A program made the position numbers and the translations under genes. A stretch of DNA of 62,861 nt, filler included, from Octopus bimaculoides (lineage: Eukaryota): NCBI RefSeq assembly GCF_001194135.2. It is 5 parts of 5 records of this genome, joined end to end, with 100 filler letters (N's around TTAATTAATTAA, not from the genome) between each part and the next. Parts side by side here need not be neighbours in the genome. Positions count along the whole stretch, not along the records: positions 23,897 to 39,181 come from NC_068992.1; 4 more parts are not named here. One strand, given 5' to 3'. This document shows, piece after piece, positions 26,547 through 39,300 of this stretch. Below the pieces are notes generated by a model. It worked only from the letters and a program-made list of their open reading frames with translations. It did no database searches and was not told the origin of the DNA. Each line of letters begins with the position of its first letter. Within the stretch, counting starts at the first letter, position 1.

Positions 26547-28224
26547 TTACGATAAATTAATTAAAAGTGTTTTCTCCTAAAAATTCAATCTAATTATACC
26601 TAAAGAAAAAGATACATAAAACAACCCTCAACGTCAACACTTCAAAAACCTAATAGAATATTTTAAATATGTTTTCACCGAAAAAATAAAAAAATACCAG
26701 CCCCCACCACACACAAACACATGCGCATACACACACACANNNNNNNNNNNNNNNNNNNNNNNNNNNNNNNNNNNNNNNNNNNNNNNNNNNNNNNNNNNNN
26801 NNNNNNNNNNNNNNNNNNNNNNNNNNNNNNNNNNNNNNNNNNNNNNNNNNNNNNNNNNNNNNNNNNNNNNNNNNNNNNNNNNNNNNNNNNNNNNNNNNNN
26901 NNNNNNNNNNNNNNNNNNNNNNNNNNNNNNNNNNNNNNNNNNNNNNNNNNNNNNNNNNNNNNNNNNNNNNNNNNNNNNNNNNNNNNNNNNNNNNNNNNNN
27001 NNNNNNNNNNNNNNNNNNNNNNNNNNNNNNNNNNNNNNNNNNNNNNNNNNNNNNNNNNNNNNNNNNNNNNNNNNNNNNNNNNNNNNNNNNNNNNNNNNNN
27101 NNNNNNNNNNNNNNNNNNNNNNNNNNNNNNNNNNNNNNNNNNNNNNNNNNNNNNNNNNNNNNNNNNNNNNNNNNNNNNNNNNNNNNNNNNNNNNNNNNNN
27201 NNNNNNNNNNNNNNNNNNNNNNNNNNNNNNNNNNNNNNNNNNNNNNNNNNNNNNNNNNNNNNNNNNNNNNNNNNNNNNNNNNNNNNNNNNNNNNNNNNNN
27301 NNNNNNNNNNNNNNNNNNNNNNNNNNNNNNNNNNNNNAAAAATACCACTCAAGTTTAATATGGATAGGGGTAACTAATGGATTTGTTGAAATAAAATTCT
27401 CCACATCCCCCAATCAGGAAACAATTTCAATACCTTAGGCTTGCCATTGCCCCGTGGTAATGCTGCGAGCCTGCTGGCTGGCTTCAGTAGGTTCCATTGA
27501 AACTTATGGTGTGCGACCAAATGTAGCACTTCATGCTGCATTGATATTTCTTTTGTCTCTCTCTTTCTCTTTCTTTCTCTCTTCTCTTTATCTTTTTTAT
27601 CTTGATTTTATTGTTTTCTTTGTCTTTCTTTTGTAAAACCTTATATTAAGGAAAAATAAGAATAAGAGATATTTTTTCATACAATAAATTTGATAGTAAT
27701 AAATAATAAATTCATTCCTGCAGCAGCTAGTGAGAACACCAGATGCTGTTTGATCTTGGGATGACTTTTTGTCTCCCTCTGATATACAGTGTTTTTAAAC
27801 AGTGCCTCCATAAGAGATTTTTCTTGAATAAAAACTGCAGCAACTGGCCTATCACCAGTGTATATACATTAAGTATGATAAATTGAAGGTTTATGTGTGT
27901 GAAATTTGAAACTAAACAACACCATTTGTTTTAAATTTCAAGGAAGTGATTTAGCTAATACTTTCAAATGCAAATAAATATGATTATTCACTTCATATGT
28001 CAAACAAAATATATTTCTCTACAAAAGATAAAGAACTGAAATTGTCCAACACTAATAAATTGTTTGTTTCTTTTTCTTAAATGTTGTCTTAAATAATTTA
28101 AAGAAATTACTTAAATGCATGAATTGTTGTTGTTGGCACTCCGACCCCATGGTTTGAATGAAACATTGGCTTTTTTTAACATCTTCAATGTTAACAACAA
28201 AAGTTTTGTTATGTATATATCTGC

Positions 28225-28328: not shown

Positions 28329-28939
28329 ATCTATAAACCCAAGCATGTTTATTTTTCTGNNNNNNNNNNNNNNNNNNNNNNNNNNNNNNNNNNNNNNNNN
28401 NNNNNNNNNNNNNNNNNNNNNNNNNNNNNNNNNNNNNNNNNNNNNNNNNNNNNNNNNNNNNNNNNNNNNNNNNNNNNNNNNNNNNNNNNNNNNNNNNNNN
28501 NNNNNNNNNNNNNNNNNNNNNNNNNNNNNNNNNNNNNNNNNNNNNNNNNNNNNNNNNNNNNNNNNNNNNNNNNNNNNNNNNNNNNNNNNNNNNNNNNNNN
28601 NNNNNNNNNNNNNNNNNNNNNNNNNNNNNNNNNNNNNNNNNNNNNNNNNNNNNNNNNNNNNNNNNNNNNNNNNNNNNNNNNNNNNNNNNNNNNNNNNNNN
28701 NNNNNNNNNNNNNNNNNNNNNNNNNNNNNNNTATATATATATATATTGAGAGAGAGAGAAAGAGTAAAAATTATTTGCCAGAATAATGTGGCAGTCCTGG
28801 TTAGGAAGAATGTGACTGCTATTTAGACCCAGTAAACACTGTCTCCAGCTAGCTATCAACACACTATCTGCATCCTTATATTTTCAAACAAGGGAGTTTA
28901 GTGTCTCCACTCAGCTCTAAAGCAATATTTGCGTGCTGA

Positions 28940-29607: not shown

Positions 29608-31388
29608 TGTGTATTTATATATATATATATATATATNNNNNNNNNNNNNNNNNNNNNNNNNNNNNNNNNNNNNNNNNNNNNNNNNNNNNNNNNNNNNNNN
29701 NNNNNNNNNNNNNNNNNNNNNNNNNNNNNNNNNNNNGACAAAAGAAAGAAAAAGAAAACAAAGGAATACTAAGGATTGTTTTTGAAATTTTAAAATTCTG
29801 TTTGTTACTTTAAAGAACTTCCTGCTCTCAGTTACTATTCAAGTGAATTACACATAGACACATATGTCCATATACACATATATGTATATACAAATATATG
29901 CATTTATGCATAACACACACACATACACACACACATACATACACACACATACACACACATACACACACACGACACACACACATGTAATTAAAGCTGTACC
30001 AATACACTAAAATTAGACGCACACATGCACATACAATCTTGTTGACAAATCATATTACATCTCACTTTAGATCCAAGCCCAAAATTTTTTAGGAGTGGAT
30101 TAGATGTAGCTGTGTAGCACATACACATTGATTCTACACTCTTCATTAGAATTAGTTTATCAAACCAACGAAAGAACTAACAAGCAAACTGACCGCAACA
30201 AGATTTGAAATCAGAATATAAAGGATCAAAATTTAAAAAAAAAAACCATTTAGCTTGACGCTGTATTGATTCAGAGCAGTCACTGATTTGTGAAAATCAC
30301 ATTTTCAATTAACCAGTAAGTTTTGGTTTCTTATTTCCTCTACTTGTTTGTTTTTATCTTTTATCTTTCACTTGCTTCATTCATTAAACTGTAGAACATG
30401 CTGGGGCACAACCTTGAAGGGTTCAGGAGTTCTCAGCCATTTTTTTATCTACAGACCCCTTTCATTACTATTTTATTCTGGTTGACCCCCATCTCATTAC
30501 TATTCNNNNNNNNNNTATCTACAGACCCCTTTCATTACTATTTTATTCTGGTTGACCCCCATCTCATTACTATTCAATGTTCAAAAACTAGTTTTATAGA
30601 AACTTCTTTTACAAATTCCTATTTTGTTTTTCACACATTAACTTGAATAGGTTGAACCATATAAAATGTTAGAGAAAAACCACCCAGCTATTTCTTGCAA
30701 TACATAACAATACATACATCTAAAGCAAAATTTTTTCAGGGGCCTTTAAAATAGTATTGTGTTTCATCAGGAGTTAATTTTGCTAAAAACCAGTTTTGTG
30801 AGAATGGAGAGAGTTAATAAGCCTATTGAAGAAAGTTACACATTAGAATATTTAAACTGAAATCTCAACTCAAATGGTACTGTTAAGTTAATTATGACCA
30901 ACTCACTGAATCTGTCTAAAGTAGTGGTTGCTGCTTTGGTTTTACCTCCAAATCAACCCTATCTGGCAAAACTATGATCAAAAGGCATTCTCAGTGATAA
31001 TCTCAGTTTTCCCTACAAACATAGTGCCCCTAAGACTACTCTAACAAAAAAACCATCATTTTTTTAAAAGTGGTAATATTTGGATTATATTTCTAGCAGA
31101 TCATTTATGTAAAGCAACTGGCAGTGCTAAGTGGCCTGATTGTATAAGATTATTTGAGTAAATAATGTGTATAGTTAAGTACGGTTAAATATAAGAAACT
31201 ATTGGCACACGCAGTTTTAAATGAGAGCGTTTGATAAAAAAAGATTACTATAATCTAATCTATCAATTTTATTGTACTATAATTTTGATGGCCCATTACA
31301 CACTCTAGTTCGTGGGAGCCCACAAAGATAATCCTCCTCCTCCTCCTCGTCCTCCTCCTCCTCGTCCTCCTCGTCCTCGTCCTCCTCC

Positions 31389-32099: not shown

Positions 32100-32240
32100 A
32101 CCTGTACAGGTAAAATTCATCTGTGTCTTACACAAGTTCAGCTTTGTGGGTTTTGGAATGGGTTTAAATTTTAACCCATTTTCCAAGAGTTTAATTTCTT
32201 CTTTAGATAATATTTGTAATGGGAAATTTTGAGTAACTGT
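32100..32240 (-). mobile_element. Penelope-like RT N-terminal fragment
   Basis: 'LSKEEIKLLENGLKFKPIPKP' resembles the PLE motif LS..E..LL.KGL.F.P. Confidence 0.5.
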
Positions 32241-32316
32241 TCTGACTTTCAATAAAAAGTGATATATTTTCTCTATTTTCAAAAAGTCATTCAAATATTT
32301 TGTTTACTTTCAGATT

Positions 32317-32362
32317 ATGAATTGCATTTTCATTTTACTTTGTCTCCTGCAAATAGTTTACA
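32317..32362 (+). CDS. PLAT-like secreted protein gene, coding exon 1 (signal peptide)
   Basis: tttactttcag|ATT-ATG...TAC A|gtaagt encodes MNCIFILLCLLQIVY and ends in phase 1. Confidence 0.7.
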
Positions 32363-33019
32363 GTAAGTATTCTAACCTATAACTTCCTTCATGAATTCTT
32401 AAAATAATAATTTTCATCTCATCAAAACATATTTATATATATATANNNNNNNNNNNNNNNNNNNNNNNNNNNNNNNNNNNNNNNNNNNNNNNNNNNNNNN
32501 NNNNNNNNNNNNNNNNNNNNNNNNNNNNNNNNNNNNNNNNNNNNNNNNNNNNNNNNNNNNNNNNNNNNNNNNNNNNNNNNNNNNNNNNNNNNNNNNNNNN
32601 NNNNNNNNNNNNNNNNNNNNNNNNNNNNNNNNNNNNNNNNNNNNNNNNNNNNNNNNNNNNNNNNNNNNNNNNNNNNNNNNNNNNNNNNNNNNNNNNNNNN
32701 NNNNNNNNNNNNNAATAGCATAATACTACAGTTAATAACAACCATTGACATGAAAGATACAACTAATATTCAGAAAATCTTTGAACTAATATTGATTTTT
32801 AATTTTGATTTCTAATATTGGCACAAGGCCAGCAATTTTGGTAGAGAGTATATGTCCATTTCATTGAACCCAGTATTCAACTGGTACTTATTTTGTTGAC
32901 CCTGAAAGGATGAATGGCAAAGTCGACCTTGGCAGTCTTTTGAATAATATCAATTTTTCATCTAATGAATTTAAGTTTTTTTGTCCAATTTCTGACACTA
33001 ATTATCAATAATTCTTTAG

Positions 33020-33091
33020 GCTCCGTGGATCAGAATAAACATGCCCAGAGTGCAAAAGATCTACAAATACAGAACTATCCAATGCCAAAAG
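33020..33091 (+). CDS. PLAT-like secreted protein gene, exon 2
   Basis: tctttag|...AAAG|gtatg; 72 nt, phase 1-1; (S)SVDQNKHAQSAKDLQIQNYPMPK(G). Confidence 0.7.
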
Positions 33092-33789: not shown

Positions 33790-33994
33790 CATACCCATTC
33801 AATTCTTCCTGTCAGATTTAAGAACTATAATTTCATAGTGTTGTTTTTAATAAACAAACGAGAATGTGCATTTTCTGAAATGATTTGATAAGTAGTTCTG
33901 AGTTTTACAATTCTATAATTTTGATAAGTAGTTCTGAGTTTTACAATTCTATAAATAATAATATTTTATAAGCTTAAAGCTTATAAGCTATCAC

Positions 33995-34235
33995 CTGTAT
34001 TGGTTTGTTCATGTTCCTGTAATATAGCGGTTTGGCAAAAGAGATTGATATAATAAGTACCAGGTTTTAAACAAGGTTTGTTCATGTTTCTTTAACATAG
34101 CGGTTTGGCAAAAGCGTTCGATACAATAAGTACCAGGCTTTAAACAATAAGTACTGGAGTCGATTTGTTCAACTAAAATCCTTTGAGGCGGTGCCCCAGA
34201 ATGGCCGTAGTTCAATGACTGAAAGAAGTAAAAAA
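33995..34235 (+). mobile_element. SINE 3' portion, duplicated at 37380-37562
   Basis: Same family as 13232; part of the tandemly duplicated gene segment. Confidence 0.7.
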
Positions 34236-34307
34236 CGGTGTACAAACAGTATTATTACAAACAGTCAATCTATGCAATAAACATTATCTCATTGTGCTTT
34301 GTTTCAG

Positions 34308-34564
34308 GTTACTGCTGGAGAATCACATTTTATATTTCAAGGAAACTTTTGTCTGGAACCTCAAACTATATCACTGTTCAATTAATCAATGATGAAACAC
34401 GAGTTTTCTCAAATAGATTACCCTGTTCAGATAAATGTGAAAGGGGATCTCAACCAAGCTTTTATTTTTGCACTCCACAAATTGATCCAGTAAAAGAAGT
34501 AAAATTAAATGAAACGGTAAAACATTTCTGGAATGGATTGACATCTGTTTGGAGATTGGAAAGC
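34308..34564 (+). CDS. PLAT-like gene exon A1
   Basis: gtttcag|GT TAC...GAA AGC|gtaagt; 257 nt, phase 1-0. Encodes YCWRITFYISRKLLSGTSNYITVQL...KCERGSQPSFYF...VKEVKL...WRLES, which resembles PLAT/LH2 (GT...V.+.L; ERG....F; W.L+.V). Confidence 0.8.
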
Positions 34565-34626
34565 GTAAGTATTTGGATAGAATTCTCATTTTTAATCCGT
34601 GTGTGTGTGTGTGTGTGTATGTGTGG

Positions 34627-34700
<74 letters not shown>

Positions 34701-34834
34701 ATGTGCGTGATTTTGCAGCATTATCATGTTACTCAAAAGGTCCTGTTTTCGATTCAGGTAATAACATATCAGTATCTAACTCCTTCTCTTACGGCTTTCA
34801 ATTCAGGTAAAGAAACAGGTACATAAATATAAGG

Positions 34835-35925
34835 ATATGAAAATATCTCCTTTTAATGTAGAACATAATCAACTAAAGTAACACCTGTTGGCACAAACAG
34901 AGTTAAGCTATCAACAGATATATTTCAGTGTGATAATCTTTTTATCTGTAATACTGTTTGTATTAGCAGTGAATCCCTTGTCAGCACTGTTAACAAAATG
35001 TGAAGGCTACATGCTGAGATATACAGGAAAGAATAAAGTTAATGTCATCCACACATTTTTTGTTGATGACGTAAAGTGTAATATGATCAGCATCAAGAGA
35101 CAATTAGAACTACACGAGATAAAGGAATGGAGTTAAGCTAGATAAATGCTTATACATGATAGTCAATCGAGGAAAGATTGTTGACCAGACACAGAACATG
35201 AACATCAACAGCTTGTCATCTCCCCAATTTCTAATGATAAAATCTACAATTACCTCGGAATCGATGAGAATGTTGCATACGTTGGTGCGGTGACTAAAGC
35301 CGGTAAAGCAACAGAATACTTCTGTAGACTCCCGAAAATATGGGATGTCTGCATTTAACCATATCTCACAATGCTTTTGCAGTACAATTGCTAATACCAA
35401 TATTTGAGATATTGGATTGGATACTTGATGAGATACACAGTCTGGATATGAAAACCAGAAAGGTACTGACCACCCCTGGCAACTTCCATATTAACAACGA
35501 CACCGATAGGATATATGTGAGATGAAATGATGGCAGTAGAGGCATAAGGTCAATCCAAAAACCCTTTGGAATTCGCATTGTATCACTCAGACAACACCAG
35601 CTGAACAGTAAAGAAAGAAATGAGTACGTTCCATGCATACTCAAAAGGGAGAGCAACAACATTGTCAGAGTGGTAGAACTACTGAGTAGGTGCTCTGAGA
35701 ATACAGCTATCTTATGCAACAACCCAATGGAGACTGGACTGGCCAACTTAAACAGAAGCTTGAAGGAGAAGCAGGTATCATACCAGCAAAAAGCAATGCA
35801 TGGGTACATATCCCATAAGATAGAGAGCAACAACAGTATTGACAGGAAGAGCAGTCTCTCCTGGGCCCACAATAGATACATTACAACCCAGATACTCCTT
35901 TGTGCTGATTTCAAGCTAGATTCAA
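34835..35925 (+). mobile_element. R4/Dong-type LINE RT fragment, degraded
   Basis: 'LFVLAVNPLS', 'HTFFVDDVK', 'YNYLGIDE', 'LDMKTRKVLT...DRIYV...RGI'. Confidence 0.75.
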
Positions 35926-35929
35926 TGAA

Positions 35930-36300
35930 TTGAGAATCCATGACACTTCCATCATTCGCCATGGCTCCAGGTACCAACACAAAGGCAGAAATTTTAGTCT
36001 CAAACACAGTAGGGATGTCAGAAGAGTTATATGCAATTACTCGAGAATTTCTGCGATTCACCTCAGCATCCACAGTGAACTTCTTCTCAACCACAAACAT
36101 GAGAGTTTTTAAGGCACCTTGATGCTTGACGAATGACAGAAGCTTTGAGCATCTCTTAGCTCTGATTGCTTTGCCCTTGGCTGTTAGTAGGTGACGGTGT
36201 CGTCGAACACGGCTAGTCATGCCAAGGTTCCTGTTCACAGCTCAGATCACCGTGGAAAGGGACACATTGCATTTCATTGAAAGAGTTGTCATGGATGTGA
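35930..36300 (-). mobile_element. maT/mariner-like transposase fragment
   Basis: 'EKKFTVDAEVNRRNSRVIA...PTVFETK...VLVPGAMANDG' resembles DEK.F.V...N.QN.R...VMVWG. Confidence 0.6.
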
Positions 36301-36369
36301 ATGGGTTGGGTTCAGTCCAGCGTGTGTTACATGCAACGTGCTTTACATTTTTATTTCATTTCTTTGCAG

Positions 36370-36463
36370 ATTGATTTGATGAACTTGAATACTTCAGCTA
36401 ATTATAGATGCACACTCGATAACCCTGATGCCGACGAAAAAGGCTGTAAACTAAATCCCACAG
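36370..36463 (+). CDS. PLAT-like gene exon B1
   Basis: tctttgcag|ATT...ACA G|gtaaat; 94 nt, phase 0-1; IDLMNLNTSANYRCTLDNPDADEKGCKLNPT. Confidence 0.75.
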
Positions 36464-36526
36464 GTAAATTATAACATATGTCTATGTAGTTAATGAGCTA
36501 TACACATAGACAAATATATATATATT

Positions 36527-36846
36527 ATAATTATACCATATGTTACATATAAAATCATACCTTGATACTGTGTGGGCTAAAATCCCTGTTGACAGGCCGC
36601 TGATATTTATAGGGTGTTAAACACTTTATGTATGCAAATTAGAGACTCCTTGATAGAGTAACTGCTGCATTTGTTGAGTATATAAACAGTTTGGCTGCTT
36701 GTTTCTCTGGAGACTGTCAGAATGATGCAGATGCCTCTGATGAGAACCCAACAAGGTTCGAAAATTGATTAAAGCTATTCATTAATTTTTATCAATCTGC
36801 AGAGAAGTGGCTAAAATTTGCCCTGTTCATAATTATACCATATGTT
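36527..36846 (+). mobile_element. PLE pLTR-like insertion bounded by 18-bp direct repeats, with a degenerate hammerhead at 36733-36775
   Basis: ATAATTATACCATATGTT occurs at 36527-36544 and 36829-36846. The insert is absent from the paralogous intron at 38880-38931. Motif: CUGAUGA-GAACC-CAACAA-GGUUC-GAAA. Confidence 0.6.
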
Positions 36847-36856
36847 CTGTACACAG

Positions 36857-36915
36857 AAAGAGAAGGAGAAATCATTACCAATCCAAACAAGTATTTGTGT
36901 AGAAGAAATGAATGA
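36857..36915 (+). CDS. PLAT-like gene putative terminal exon C1
   Basis: ctgtacacag|AA AGA...GAA TGA; phase 1; (E)REGEIITNPNKYLCRRNE*. The stop and Cys are conserved in C2. Confidence 0.45.
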
Positions 36916-37318
36916 GGTTAAAAAATAGACTGTCAATGGAGATAGTACAAATATACAATGAGCTATTTTCAGGTTCTATCTACCAAATCCACTCACAATG
37001 CTTTCATCAGTTCGGTGTTATAATAGAAGACACTTGTCCAAGGTGCTGTGAATAGGATGGAATGCAAACCCACATGGTTTGGAAGTAAGCTTCACAACTA
37101 CACAGACATACCTGTGCCTCAAAAATATTTATTAAGTAGTTTTAAATATGGACGCAAATGTGGCTATGTAGTAGGAAGTTTACTTTTCCAGCACACACAT
37201 GATTCTGAGTTCAATCCTACTGCTTGACACCTAGGGCAAATGTCTTTTACCATAGCCTCAGGCCAACCAAAGCTTTGTGGGTAGATTTAACGAAGATGCC
37301 CATCCTATATGTATATGT

Positions 37319-37350
<32 letters not shown>

Positions 37351-37634
37351 CTTTGCATTTGTGTTTGCCTCACAATCACTACCTGACCACCAGTATTGGT
37401 TTGTTCACATTCCTGTAACATAGCAGTTTGACAAAAGAGATTGATATAATAAATACCAGGTTTTAAGCAATAAGTACTGGAGTCGATTCGTTCAACTAAA
37501 ATCCTTCGAGGCGGTGCCCCAGCATGGCCGTAGTTCAATGACTGAAAGAAGTAAAAGATAAAATGTATACAAACAGTATTATTACAAGCAGTCAATCTAT
37601 GCAATAAACATTATCTCATTGTGCTTTGTTTCAG

Positions 37635-37891
37635 GTTACTGCTGGAGAATCAAATTCTATATTTCAAGGAAACTTTTGTCTGGAACCTCAAACTATATCA
37701 CTGTTCAATTAATCAATGATGAAACACGTGTTTTCTCAAATAGATTATCTTGTGCAAAAAAATGTAAAAGGGGATCTCAACCAAGCTTTTATTTTTGCAC
37801 TCCACAAATTGATCCAGTAAAAGAATTACAATTAAATGAAACGGTAAAAAATTTCTGGAAGGGATTTGTATCTGGTTGGACATTGGAAAGT
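37635..37891 (+). CDS. PLAT-like gene exon A2 (duplicate of A1)
   Basis: Same splice sites and length as A1; 19 nt differences; no stop codons. Confidence 0.8.
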
Positions 37892-38552
37892 GTAAGTATT
37901 TGGATAGAATTCTCATTTTTAATCCATGTGTGTGTGTGTTTTAGTGTGACTCTGTAAGTGAGGTTGTGAGTTCGCTTCCGGAACTTGGCTGTGCGTTGTA
38001 TTCTTGAGCAAGACACTTTATTTCACGTTGCTCCAGTTCACTCAGCTGCAGAAATGAGTTGTGACATCTCTGATGCCAATGGAAGATACACAAGAGGTGA
38101 GAACACAACCTGCATGGAGGATCATAGAGCAGCAGAGGTCCTCTGTAAAGGGGAGCAGACAATGCAAGCTTTGCATAGCAGTGCAAGCAAGGATCCTTAA
38201 AGACTTGCTGGGCTTGCAGTCTCTCTTATACACAAGACATGAGGTCTATAGTCCATGCCCCCATTTTAAATGCTACCTGCTGCAGGTGTGGGATATCTAG
38301 TTTTATGATTAGGGCTGTAAAAAGTATTTGCAGACCGGAATCAACCTAAGGGCAGAGGTTGCCTGTTCATCCTTTAAATCCATAAGATCTTCCAACCAGA
38401 CCTGTCAATGGGTGATAACCTATCTCGTTTACAGGTCAGACAGTGTACTTACTGCTCTAAATTTTAGAGTGTGCTTCTTTTTAGGATATATGATCCACTC
38501 ACTATATATATATCATCATCATCATCGTCGTCGTCCATCTCTCTATCTCTCT

Positions 38553-38715
38553 TGGCTGTGTGGTAAGCAGCTTGCTTACCAGTCACATGGTTCCGGGTTC
38601 AGTTCCACTGCGTGGCATCTTAGGCAAATGTCTTCTACTATAGCCTCGGGCCGACCNNNNNNNNNNCAGCATGGCCGCAGTCAAATGACTGAAACAAGTT
38701 AAAGAGTAAAGAGTA
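38553..38715 (+). mobile_element. tRNA-derived SINE, second family (gap inside)
   Basis: 'ggctgtgtggtaagcagcttgc...ggttccgggttcagttccactgcgtggca'. Related copies at 37160-37290 (+) and 24650-24730 (-). Confidence 0.7.
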
Positions 38716-38785
38716 AAGAGTATATGTTTGTGTGCATGTGTGTTAAATGCAACATGCTTTACATATTTGTTTCACTTTTTTGCAG

Positions 38786-38879
38786 ATTGATTTGATGAAC
38801 TTGAATACTTCAGCTGAATATAGATGCACACTCGATTACCCTGGTGCCGAGAAAAAAGGCTGTAAACTAAATCCCGCAG
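38786..38879 (+). CDS. PLAT-like gene exon B2 (duplicate of B1)
   Basis: tttttgcag|ATT...GCA G|gtaaat; IDLMNLNTSAEYRCTLDYPGAEKKGCKLNPA. Confidence 0.75.
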
Positions 38880-38931: not shown

Positions 38932-39059
38932 AGAGTGACAGAGAGAGAGAGAGAGAAAGAAAGAAAGAAAGAGGGGGAGAGAGAAAGCTGGGGAGAGAGA
39001 AAGCTGGGGGAGAAATCATTACTGATCCAAACAAGTTTCTGTGTAGAAGAAGTAAATGA
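38932..39059 (+). CDS. PLAT-like gene putative terminal exon C2
   Basis: gtatacag| acceptor; a GA-rich expansion stays in frame to GEIITDPNKFLCRRSK*. The implied intron is only 52 nt. Confidence 0.35.
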
Positions 39060-39300
39060 AGTTGAAGATGCTTGGAGAATATATGAAATTATTTGAATTT
39101 TAATACATACATAATACATCATTATCATCATTGTGTAACGTTCATCTTTCATGTATGCATGAGTAGGAAACACACACACATNNNNNNNNNNNNNNNNNNN
39201 NNNNNNNNNNNNNNNNNNNNNNNNNTTAATTAATTAANNNNNNNNNNNNNNNNNNNNNNNNNNNNNNNNNNNNNNNNNNNNTACATTAATCGTATTTCGG

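Follow-up and report, generated by a model that had tools for sequence, protein, structure and literature searches.

Gene structure of LOC106876762

In the stretch of Octopus bimaculoides DNA analysed here (62,861 nucleotides, hereafter the window), two exons, A and B, occur twice in succession (A1/B1 and A2/B2; positions of all features are given in Table 1). Used as a query, the two repeats matched XP_014780936 (isoform X2 of O. bimaculoides LOC106876762, 394 amino acids, here P0001) at 100% identity over the entire length, and P0001 spans both A1/B1 and A2/B2 at this identity. The protein has a signal peptide followed by three tandem repeats of 117 residues, which are 78-84% identical to one another. 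The window contains the 5' two-thirds of LOC106876762, which codes for a secreted protein. The third repeat (A3/B3) is situated outside the piece studied and was recovered from the chromosome locus (L002; a window coordinate is the L002 coordinate plus 22316). This part of the window corresponds to the positions of CM046612.1 that match L002 1581-16865, with a 1.2-kb gap at its end. A tblastn comparison matched exon 1 at 100% identity to residues 1-16 of P0001 and of isoform X1 (P0005).

Exons A1, B1, A2 and B2 each have an AG acceptor after a pyrimidine tract and a GTAA donor on the + strand. The A exons (257 nt) open with two codon-completing bases and close on a codon boundary and the B exons (94 nt) close with one extra base, so that B1 is spliced to A2 in frame (the junction codon is Gly) and the module of 351 nt is phase-symmetric. 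It is flanked by phase-1 introns on both sides, and the intron between A and B is of phase 0 in every unit. By the match to P0001 and the in-frame splicing, the two copies are successive domains (1 and 2) of one secreted polypeptide, neither paralogous genes nor alternative exons. Mutually exclusive alternative exons in particular are unlikely, as the RefSeq models X1 and X2 carry A1, B1, A2 and B2 in series and B1 joins A2 in frame. Two UniProt models (P0002 and P0006) join A1 straight to B2 and skip B1 and A2 (351 nt, in frame), which would yield a chimeric domain.

A divergent PLAT-like domain

PLAT-like motifs were first recognised by eye in the repeat sequence. The AlphaFold2 (AF2) models of repeats 1 and 2 are eight-strand beta-sandwiches (predicted local distance difference test, pLDDT, 72; predicted template modelling score, pTM, 0.69-0.70). 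Using Foldseek against PDB, we found that all 50 matches listed for each of the two models are PLAT/LH2 domains, with E-values down to 4e-5. Among these listed matches are the coral 8R-lipoxygenase (8R-LOX, TMq up to 0.75), 5-, 12- and 15-LOX, 11R-LOX, pancreatic lipases, lipoprotein lipase (LPL) and RAB6IP1, and the best structural matches have TMq values of 0.70-0.75.

A profile search of 1.84 billion representative proteins retrieved the octopus family, short spurious matches and a single further protein, P0011, which is the sole non-octopus full-length match (E=9e-5 across profile positions 4-98). P0011 has 2605 residues and 13 PLAT domains by Pfam. The profile aligns to eight successive repeats of P0011 with the motifs AGT, F-E-R-G and W-x-L-x-S-[VI] in register, and the matching P0011 repeat, when compared with PDB, retrieved the PLAT domains of 11R-LOX, polycystin-1 (PKD1), 8R-LOX, 5-LOX and alpha-toxin. 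The other profile matches (ankyrin, SprB, Calx-beta and similar) were judged spurious because they are short and repetitive. The automatic label "Ig-like domain-containing" given by UniProt found no support, as no immunoglobulin (Ig) family was found in Pfam and no Ig domain is present among the listed Foldseek matches.

Structure prediction and profile search show the octopus repeat, as modelled, to be a highly divergent, N-glycosylated, disulfide-bearing extracellular PLAT/LH2 beta-sandwich. Two N-x-S/T sequons are conserved in the domain, which lies behind a signal peptide and contains five or six Cys; none of the six Cys, the sequons or the core motifs is lost in repeat 2. The predicted disulfides are C39-C43 and C99-C111, with C2-C54 optional.

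Differences between repeats 1 and 2

The two copies differ at 19 of the 257 nt of exon A and at 7 of the 94 nt of exon B, exactly as counted in the earlier note. In the only open frame these are 22 non-synonymous and 4 synonymous differences (Nei-Gojobori count), replacing 13 of the 85 residues in A and 6 of the 31 in B at the very positions reported there. Residues 7-37 and 45-63 and the six Cys are the same in both copies. The Cys are, however, not invariant in the family as a whole: C2 is Phe in one module of Octopus vulgaris, and two other members have Asn or Ser in place of C54.

The pair has 277 non-synonymous and 71 synonymous sites, for which neutrality predicts 20.7:5.3 (3.9:1). The observed ratio does not depart from this expectation (binomial p=0.36), and estimates of omega range from 0.87 (YN00) to 2.05 (maximum likelihood). 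The description of the differences was therefore exact, and the pair alone is statistically neutral. The 22:4 ratio cannot by itself carry the inference of diversifying selection.

As had been reported, the final 60 nt of the intron ahead of A contain a single differing site. This does not extend to a general conservation of introns above exons or synonymous sites, as divergence is about 11% (39-41 of 368 nt) in the intron flanks that can be aligned and 7.4% in the exons. The reported addition of Lys is likewise not directional. The states concerned are alternatives shared across the family (at position 75, for example, most of the family has Lys, K75, and repeat 1 alone has Asn, N75), and a directional gain of Lys was rejected.

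Position of the replacements in the fold

The earlier observation that changes cluster in patches was correct in that they are concentrated, and by homology the patches would be the four ligand-tip loops of a PLAT-type sandwich. Eleven of the 19 replacements between repeats 1 and 2 lie in the four odd-numbered loops (beta1-2, beta3-4, beta5-6 and beta7-8), which make up 40 of the 116 codons (Fisher p=0.02; p=0.006 when the loops are defined strictly by DSSP). The even-numbered loops, on the opposite tip, contain none. Because of the up-and-down topology of the strands, the odd-numbered loops are predicted to lie together on one tip.

Wild-type 5-LOX, with its sequence checked against 3o8y, was used as the alignment partner. 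Octopus L13 and L14 align with 5-LOX W13 and F14, and D41, K42 and E44 with N43, D44 and E46, and the octopus loops 70-79 and 101-109 align with the 5-LOX loops bearing W75 and W102, respectively. These 5-LOX counterparts are Ca2+ ligands and membrane-inserting tryptophans (PMC5113960). The same residues are exactly those engineered out of "Stable-5-LOX".

The net charge of the tip loops rises from 0 in repeat 1 to +6 in repeat 3 and +8 in repeat 2, and the replacements D41K and E44K are at the positions aligned with the Ca2+ ligands N43 and E46. The proposal that the two copies have different binding specificities is plausible on these grounds (tip charge 0 against +8, and Lys at Ca2+-ligand positions); for binding itself, the argument is one of positional homology.

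Mosaicism among modules

We compared five modules at the DNA level, namely repeats 1-3 of O. bimaculoides and two modules of O. vulgaris (ov and ov2). In the quartet of repeats 1, 2, 3 and ov, the 20 informative exon sites split 9:7:4 over three incompatible groupings, and the informative sites are clustered along the exon (permutation p=0.019); other quartets had too few informative sites. Within exon A, nucleotides 34-62 group repeat 1 with repeat 2, nucleotides 122-131 (the SCAKKCK patch) group repeat 2 with repeat 3, and nucleotides 233-256 group repeat 2 with ov. Of the 26 differences between repeats 1 and 2, about 11 are states common to other modules.

As these states are shared, clustered and incompatible, they are exchanged pre-existing variants and not new mutations, a pattern that points to gene conversion among modules, with convergence the less likely alternative. 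Because the modules are mosaic, the tests for selection are confounded; mosaicism is reportedly a known cause of false positives in site-model tests, a point attributed to Anisimova et al. 2003.

Tests for selection

Pairwise omega across the five modules is 0.6-2.5, and the one-ratio model M0 gives an omega of 1.06, not different from 1. Model M2a (lnL, the log-likelihood, -979.20) fits better than M1a (lnL -983.13; likelihood-ratio test, LRT, 7.85, p=0.02), placing 44% of sites in a class with omega of about 0.01 and 56% in a class with omega of 2.15. The second-best topology, nearly tied, gives an LRT of 7.86, and a third, much poorer one gives 12.27 with another split of site classes. When codons were partitioned by structure, the tip loops have an omega of 2.08 (p=0.088 against 1) and the remainder 0.62, estimates for the core partition lying between 0.54 and 0.62. 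Between repeats 1 and 2, the loops have 13 non-synonymous and no synonymous differences and the remainder 9 and 4.

The proportion of non-synonymous differences (pN) in the loops exceeds the divergence of the flanking introns in all ten pairs, with ratios of 1.3-3.4 (ov-ov2, p=3e-5; repeat 1 against repeat 2, ratio 1.3, p=0.24), where the pairs are non-independent, the introns may themselves be converted and the loop set is partly post hoc.

We calibrated the site-model test with simulations under a neutral M1a null with 37% frozen sites. Under a three-segment mosaic null, an LRT of at least 7.85 was reached in 2 of 60 replicates and an M0 omega of at least 1.06 in none of 60; under a single-tree null, both were reached in 0 of 30. 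The empirical p under the mosaic null is about 0.03, and the mosaic raised the median LRT from 0.2 to 1.9. The site-class signal outlasts this particular null and remains marginal with five sequences. The suggestion of diversifying selection is supported in part, by a nominally significant site class with omega of about 2.1 and by loops that exceed introns; the original pair by itself is neutral. Diversifying selection on the loops is plausible, not proven.

Interpretation and alternatives

With moderate confidence, we read A1/B1 and A2/B2 as tandem PLAT-like modules of one secreted protein whose tip loops have been diversified by gene conversion together with probable selection. The repeats go back to a tandem duplication in which about 3.3 kb were copied as a unit, together with intron and SINE (short interspersed nuclear element) flanks. 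The sandwich core and the tip beside the termini are conserved, and the four loops of the opposite tip would be diversified between domains. Repeat 1 keeps acidic residues (D41 and E44) at the positions aligned with 5-LOX Ca2+ ligands and a neutral tip, and repeats 2 and 3 carry Lys at these positions and strongly basic tips. Since the tip residues and charges differ between repeats, the three domains would probably differ in the lipid or anionic surfaces that they recognise. Binding by domain 1 is predicted to be Ca2+-dependent or neutral, and domains 2 and 3 are predicted to bind anionic ligands independently of Ca2+. Gene conversion may shuffle a pool of alternative loop states among modules, and loop diversity is probably, not certainly, favoured by diversifying selection. 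The earlier note had named toxin and immune gene families in this context; in the present analysis there is no link of LOC106876762 to venom or immunity.

Several points weigh against this reading. In Pfam, no family matched repeats 1 and 2 at E<=10, PF01477 PLAT included, and the whole protein P0005 had no PLAT match at E<=0.1; a profile search of PDB sequences also gave no match. The AF2 models are of medium confidence and were built from five sequences. The definition of the beta1-2 loop was widened once the variation had been seen, and the "one surface" comes from strand topology and the 5-LOX alignment and is not a measured three-dimensional cluster. The repeat 1/repeat 2 pair is at neutrality and the loop omega is not significantly above 1. 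The site models were fitted with our own GY94/F3x4 maximum-likelihood implementation to five sequences on a single tree, despite mosaic data. Finally, converted (young) flanks beside unconverted (old) loops could mimic a loop rate of non-synonymous substitution (dN) above that of introns without selection.

The last point belongs to the main rival, in which relaxed constraint and patchy gene conversion act with no positive selection. Loop residues would be free of constraint after duplication (omega about 1), introns and conserved exon stretches would be homogenised again and again by conversion tracts, and loops that escaped conversion would look older and hypervariable. We regard this as a serious alternative, clearly less probable than our own reading. 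It agrees with the neutral ratio of the pair, with an M0 omega of 1 that is not rejected, with the loop omega just mentioned, with the clear mosaic of incompatible splits and the higher median LRT of the mosaic simulations, and with (GT)n tracts that flank every exon. Against it, neutral simulations reached an omega of 1.06 in 0 of 90 replicates and the observed LRT in only 2 of 60. Mean synonymous divergence within the loops is about 0.10, half of the loop pN of about 0.20. The variable loops are, moreover, precisely the functional tip of PLAT domains, and the loops of the opposite tip are almost invariant.

A more far-reaching interpretation, which we consider rather unlikely, is that the family comprises octopus-restricted secreted and membrane-bound recognition receptors that use a disulfide-stabilised PLAT-like ectodomain instead of Ig, lectin or leucine-rich repeat (LRR) domains, with tip loops diversified by positive selection and conversion. 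Splicing of A and B exons across repeats may then add chimeric diversity, and the YxN and YxxM tails of the membrane forms would transmit a signal once a lipid or anionic ligand is bound, with immunity and contact chemoreception as examples of possible roles.

We think it improbable that the modules serve as alternative-splicing cassettes, in which A and B exons of different repeats (for example A1-B2) are combined into chimeric domains that diversify isoforms. The phase symmetry of the 351-nt unit and the phase-0 A-B intron of every unit would permit it, two of the four annotated products (P0002 and P0006) join A1 to B2, and the stalk exon is optional between X1 and X2; the A1-B2 models, however, come from an older automatic annotation, and the current RefSeq models carry all six exons. 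That A2/B2 is a non-functional pseudo-exon pair drifting neutrally is highly improbable: the pair omega of about 1 and the skipping of B1 and A2 in P0002 and P0006 would fit, but the frame is open with canonical AG/GT sites and polypyrimidine tracts, the six Cys, both sequons and the core motifs are retained, X1 and X2 include A2/B2, the derived states SCAKKCK and SGW are common to repeat 3 and O. vulgaris modules, and omega in the core partition is 0.54-0.62 and not 1.

Octopus proteins annotated as "uncharacterized" or "Ig-like" are here re-identified as having predicted extracellular PLAT-type domains. If the diversification of loops within these tandem modules is adaptive, they would represent a lineage-specific recognition family on a lipid-binding fold, and one small enough to serve as a tractable example of how selection and gene conversion jointly shape tandem domain modules. 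If it is not, they would represent an ordinary young tandem duplication with relaxed loops.

Comparison with known systems

PLAT/LH2 domains bind membranes, lipids or partner proteins via their tip loops, often with Ca2+. Like the PLAT/LH2 domains of lipoxygenases (PF01477; the C2-like domain of human 5-LOX and coral 8R-LOX), the octopus domain is modelled as a beta-sandwich in which about 115 residues form eight strands; it carries the AGT, FERG and W-x-L motifs, and its variable patches align with the membrane and Ca2+ loops of 5-LOX (W13/F14, N43/D44/E46, W75 and W102). Unlike them, it is extracellular, has two sequons and five or six Cys, falls below the Pfam threshold, has a beta5-6 loop four residues longer and is not attached to a catalytic domain.

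In secreted lipases, the PLAT domain docks the protein on lipid particles or partner proteins via its tip loops. The C-terminal PLAT domains of pancreatic lipase and lipoprotein lipase are secreted, as is the octopus domain, and are among the top structural matches of both models. They are, however, single accessory domains of an enzyme, whereas the octopus protein consists only of tandem PLAT-like domains. Tandem PLAT arrays are also found in LOXHD1 (15 PLAT repeats) and in P0011 with its 13 PLAT domains. These proteins are cytoplasmic, Cys-poor and recognised by Pfam, and the octopus repeats are not; the octopus repeats are about 15-20% identical to repeats of the LOXHD1/P0011 type and, as recent duplicates, 78-84% identical to one another.

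KIR/LILR and the fibrinogen-related proteins (FREPs) of molluscs are lineage-specific receptor families in which both gene conversion and selection generate diversity. With these, the octopus family has in common clustered paralogues, secreted and membrane forms, tails with Tyr motifs on the membrane forms, variation concentrated in putative binding loops, a mosaic pattern and an overall omega near 1. It differs from these Ig or fibrinogen systems in that its putative recognition domain is PLAT-like and the statistical support for selection is weak.

Paralogues and gene cluster

LOC106876762 is clustered with paralogues that encode one such domain, a Ser/Thr-rich stalk, a transmembrane helix and a cytoplasmic tail with Tyr motifs. 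The last exon of an upstream paralogue of this membrane-anchored form codes for a cytoplasmic tail of 158 amino acids with about three 14-residue repeats (42-nt family D8, 26222-26446). Its Tyr motifs are YSVA (three times), YSNE and YVNS (YxN type) and YIDM (YxxM type). The tail is 62% identical to that of O. vulgaris P0004 and had no match in Pfam. The stalk exon of LOC106876762 has its homologue in the paralogues, in the stalk ahead of the transmembrane helix. This suggests that neighbouring genes of the family gave rise to LOC106876762, through either fusion or unequal crossing-over.

The signal-peptide exon and its flanks (32163-32431) are 98% identical to L002 30326-30594, 20 kb downstream, a value far above the mutual similarity of the PLAT-like modules; the downstream copy is presumably exon 1 of the next paralogue.

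In O. vulgaris, single-domain members with a stalk, transmembrane helix and tail are present at two loci, L001 and L003, which lie about 300 kb from each other. The P0007 model begins only at a B exon, yet upstream of it, at L003 7913-8157, there is an intact A exon whose splice sites are good. In this A exon, 12 nt of the beta5-beta6 loop are deleted in frame and C54 is replaced by Asn, and the exon is probably missing from the O. vulgaris annotation.

Literature searches with the gene identifiers and for PLAT/LH2 in octopus or cephalopods returned nothing on this family, which is annotated but uncharacterised and apparently restricted to octopuses. We know of no description of an architecture with signal peptide, PLAT-like domain or domains, stalk, transmembrane helix and Tyr-motif tail that is accompanied by a soluble three-domain form.

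Table 1 Features of LOC106876762 and its surroundings (window coordinates unless L002 is given)
Feature	Position	Strand	Remarks
N runs behind D1/I1-I8	25119-25718, 26740-27337, 28360-28731, 29637-29736, 32446-32713		assembly gaps
Last exon of upstream paralogue (membrane-anchored form)	26072..26546	+	tblastn with P0004 and P0007; translation
Exon 1	32317..32362	+	start codon and signal peptide MNCIFILLCLLQIVY plus 1 nt; GTAAGT donor
Exon 2	33020..33091	+	SVDQNKHAQSAKDLQIQNYPMPK; phase-1 end as in B exons; matches P0001 residues 16-40
Intron block before A1	33992..34307	+	SINE 3' part and about 80 nt to acceptor; counterpart 37388-37634; repeat families D4, D6, D7
Exon A1	34308..34564	+	residues 1-85 of PLAT-like repeat 1; beta1 to start of beta6
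(GT)n microsatellite	34598..34706	+	36 nt past A1 donor; same place after every A exon
Exon B1	36370..36463	+	residues 86-116 of repeat 1; rest of beta6, beta7, beta8; phase-1 end
Intact SINE copy before A2	37161..37562	+	reference for gap flanks; family D11
Exon A2	37635..37891	+	residues 1-85 of PLAT-like repeat 2
SINE copy in A2-B2 intron	38553..38710	+	broken by assembly gap 38657-38666; about 250 nt missing
Exon B2	38786..38879	+	residues 86-116 of repeat 2
Intron block after B2	39009..39066	+	counterpart 36865-36922; family D14
Optional stalk exon	L002 18445-18567		between repeats 2 and 3; isoform X1 (P0005) only, skipped in X2
Exon A3	L002 19911-20167		repeat 3
Exon B3	L002 21634-21727		repeat 3

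Introns, repeats and assembly gaps

The intron block ahead of A1 and its counterpart ahead of A2 differ by 9% substitutions over 243 nt, and this block is also kept before A3 and in both O. vulgaris modules. As the block after B2 has a counterpart after B1, the duplicated unit reaches past exon B.

A gap of 10 N in the A2-B2 intron lies 765 nt past A2 and 120 nt before B2. Its flanks are colinear, in the same orientation, with 37161-37268 and 37520-37562 of the intact SINE copy, so that about 250 nt of SINE are missing in the gap, which is crossed by no reading frame. The identical gap is present in the chromosome-level record (L002 16341-16350), and the linkage of A2 to B2 therefore comes from scaffolding and SINE colinearity. 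A further assembly gap (32446-32713) is located within the intron between exons 1 and 2.

Tracts of (GT)n are found at 34598-34706, 37299-37350 and 37927-37945, with counterparts in L002, L001 and L003. In both species, each A exon is followed by a (GT)n tract 36 nt past its donor and preceded by the SINE 3' part and a second (GT)n, and (GT)n also lies ahead of the B exons. This conserved placement suggests that the tracts were duplicated with the module; they may favour recombination or gene conversion.

The "219-copy" family D1 and the "100% complementary 283-nt inverted repeats" I1-I8 are N runs, that is, assembly gaps, and not repeats. Two 100% identical 60-mers (30446-30505 and 30516-30575) flank a gap of 10 N (30506-30515) and look like a gap-flanking assembly duplication, not a biological tandem repeat.

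Compared with its A2-B2 counterpart, the A1-B1 intron has about 0.9 kb of additional sequence, and it contains long open reading frames within 34888-36300. One of these, on the minus strand (35366-36238), encodes 290 amino acids and had no match in Pfam. The extra DNA of this intron is probably a decayed mobile-element insertion.

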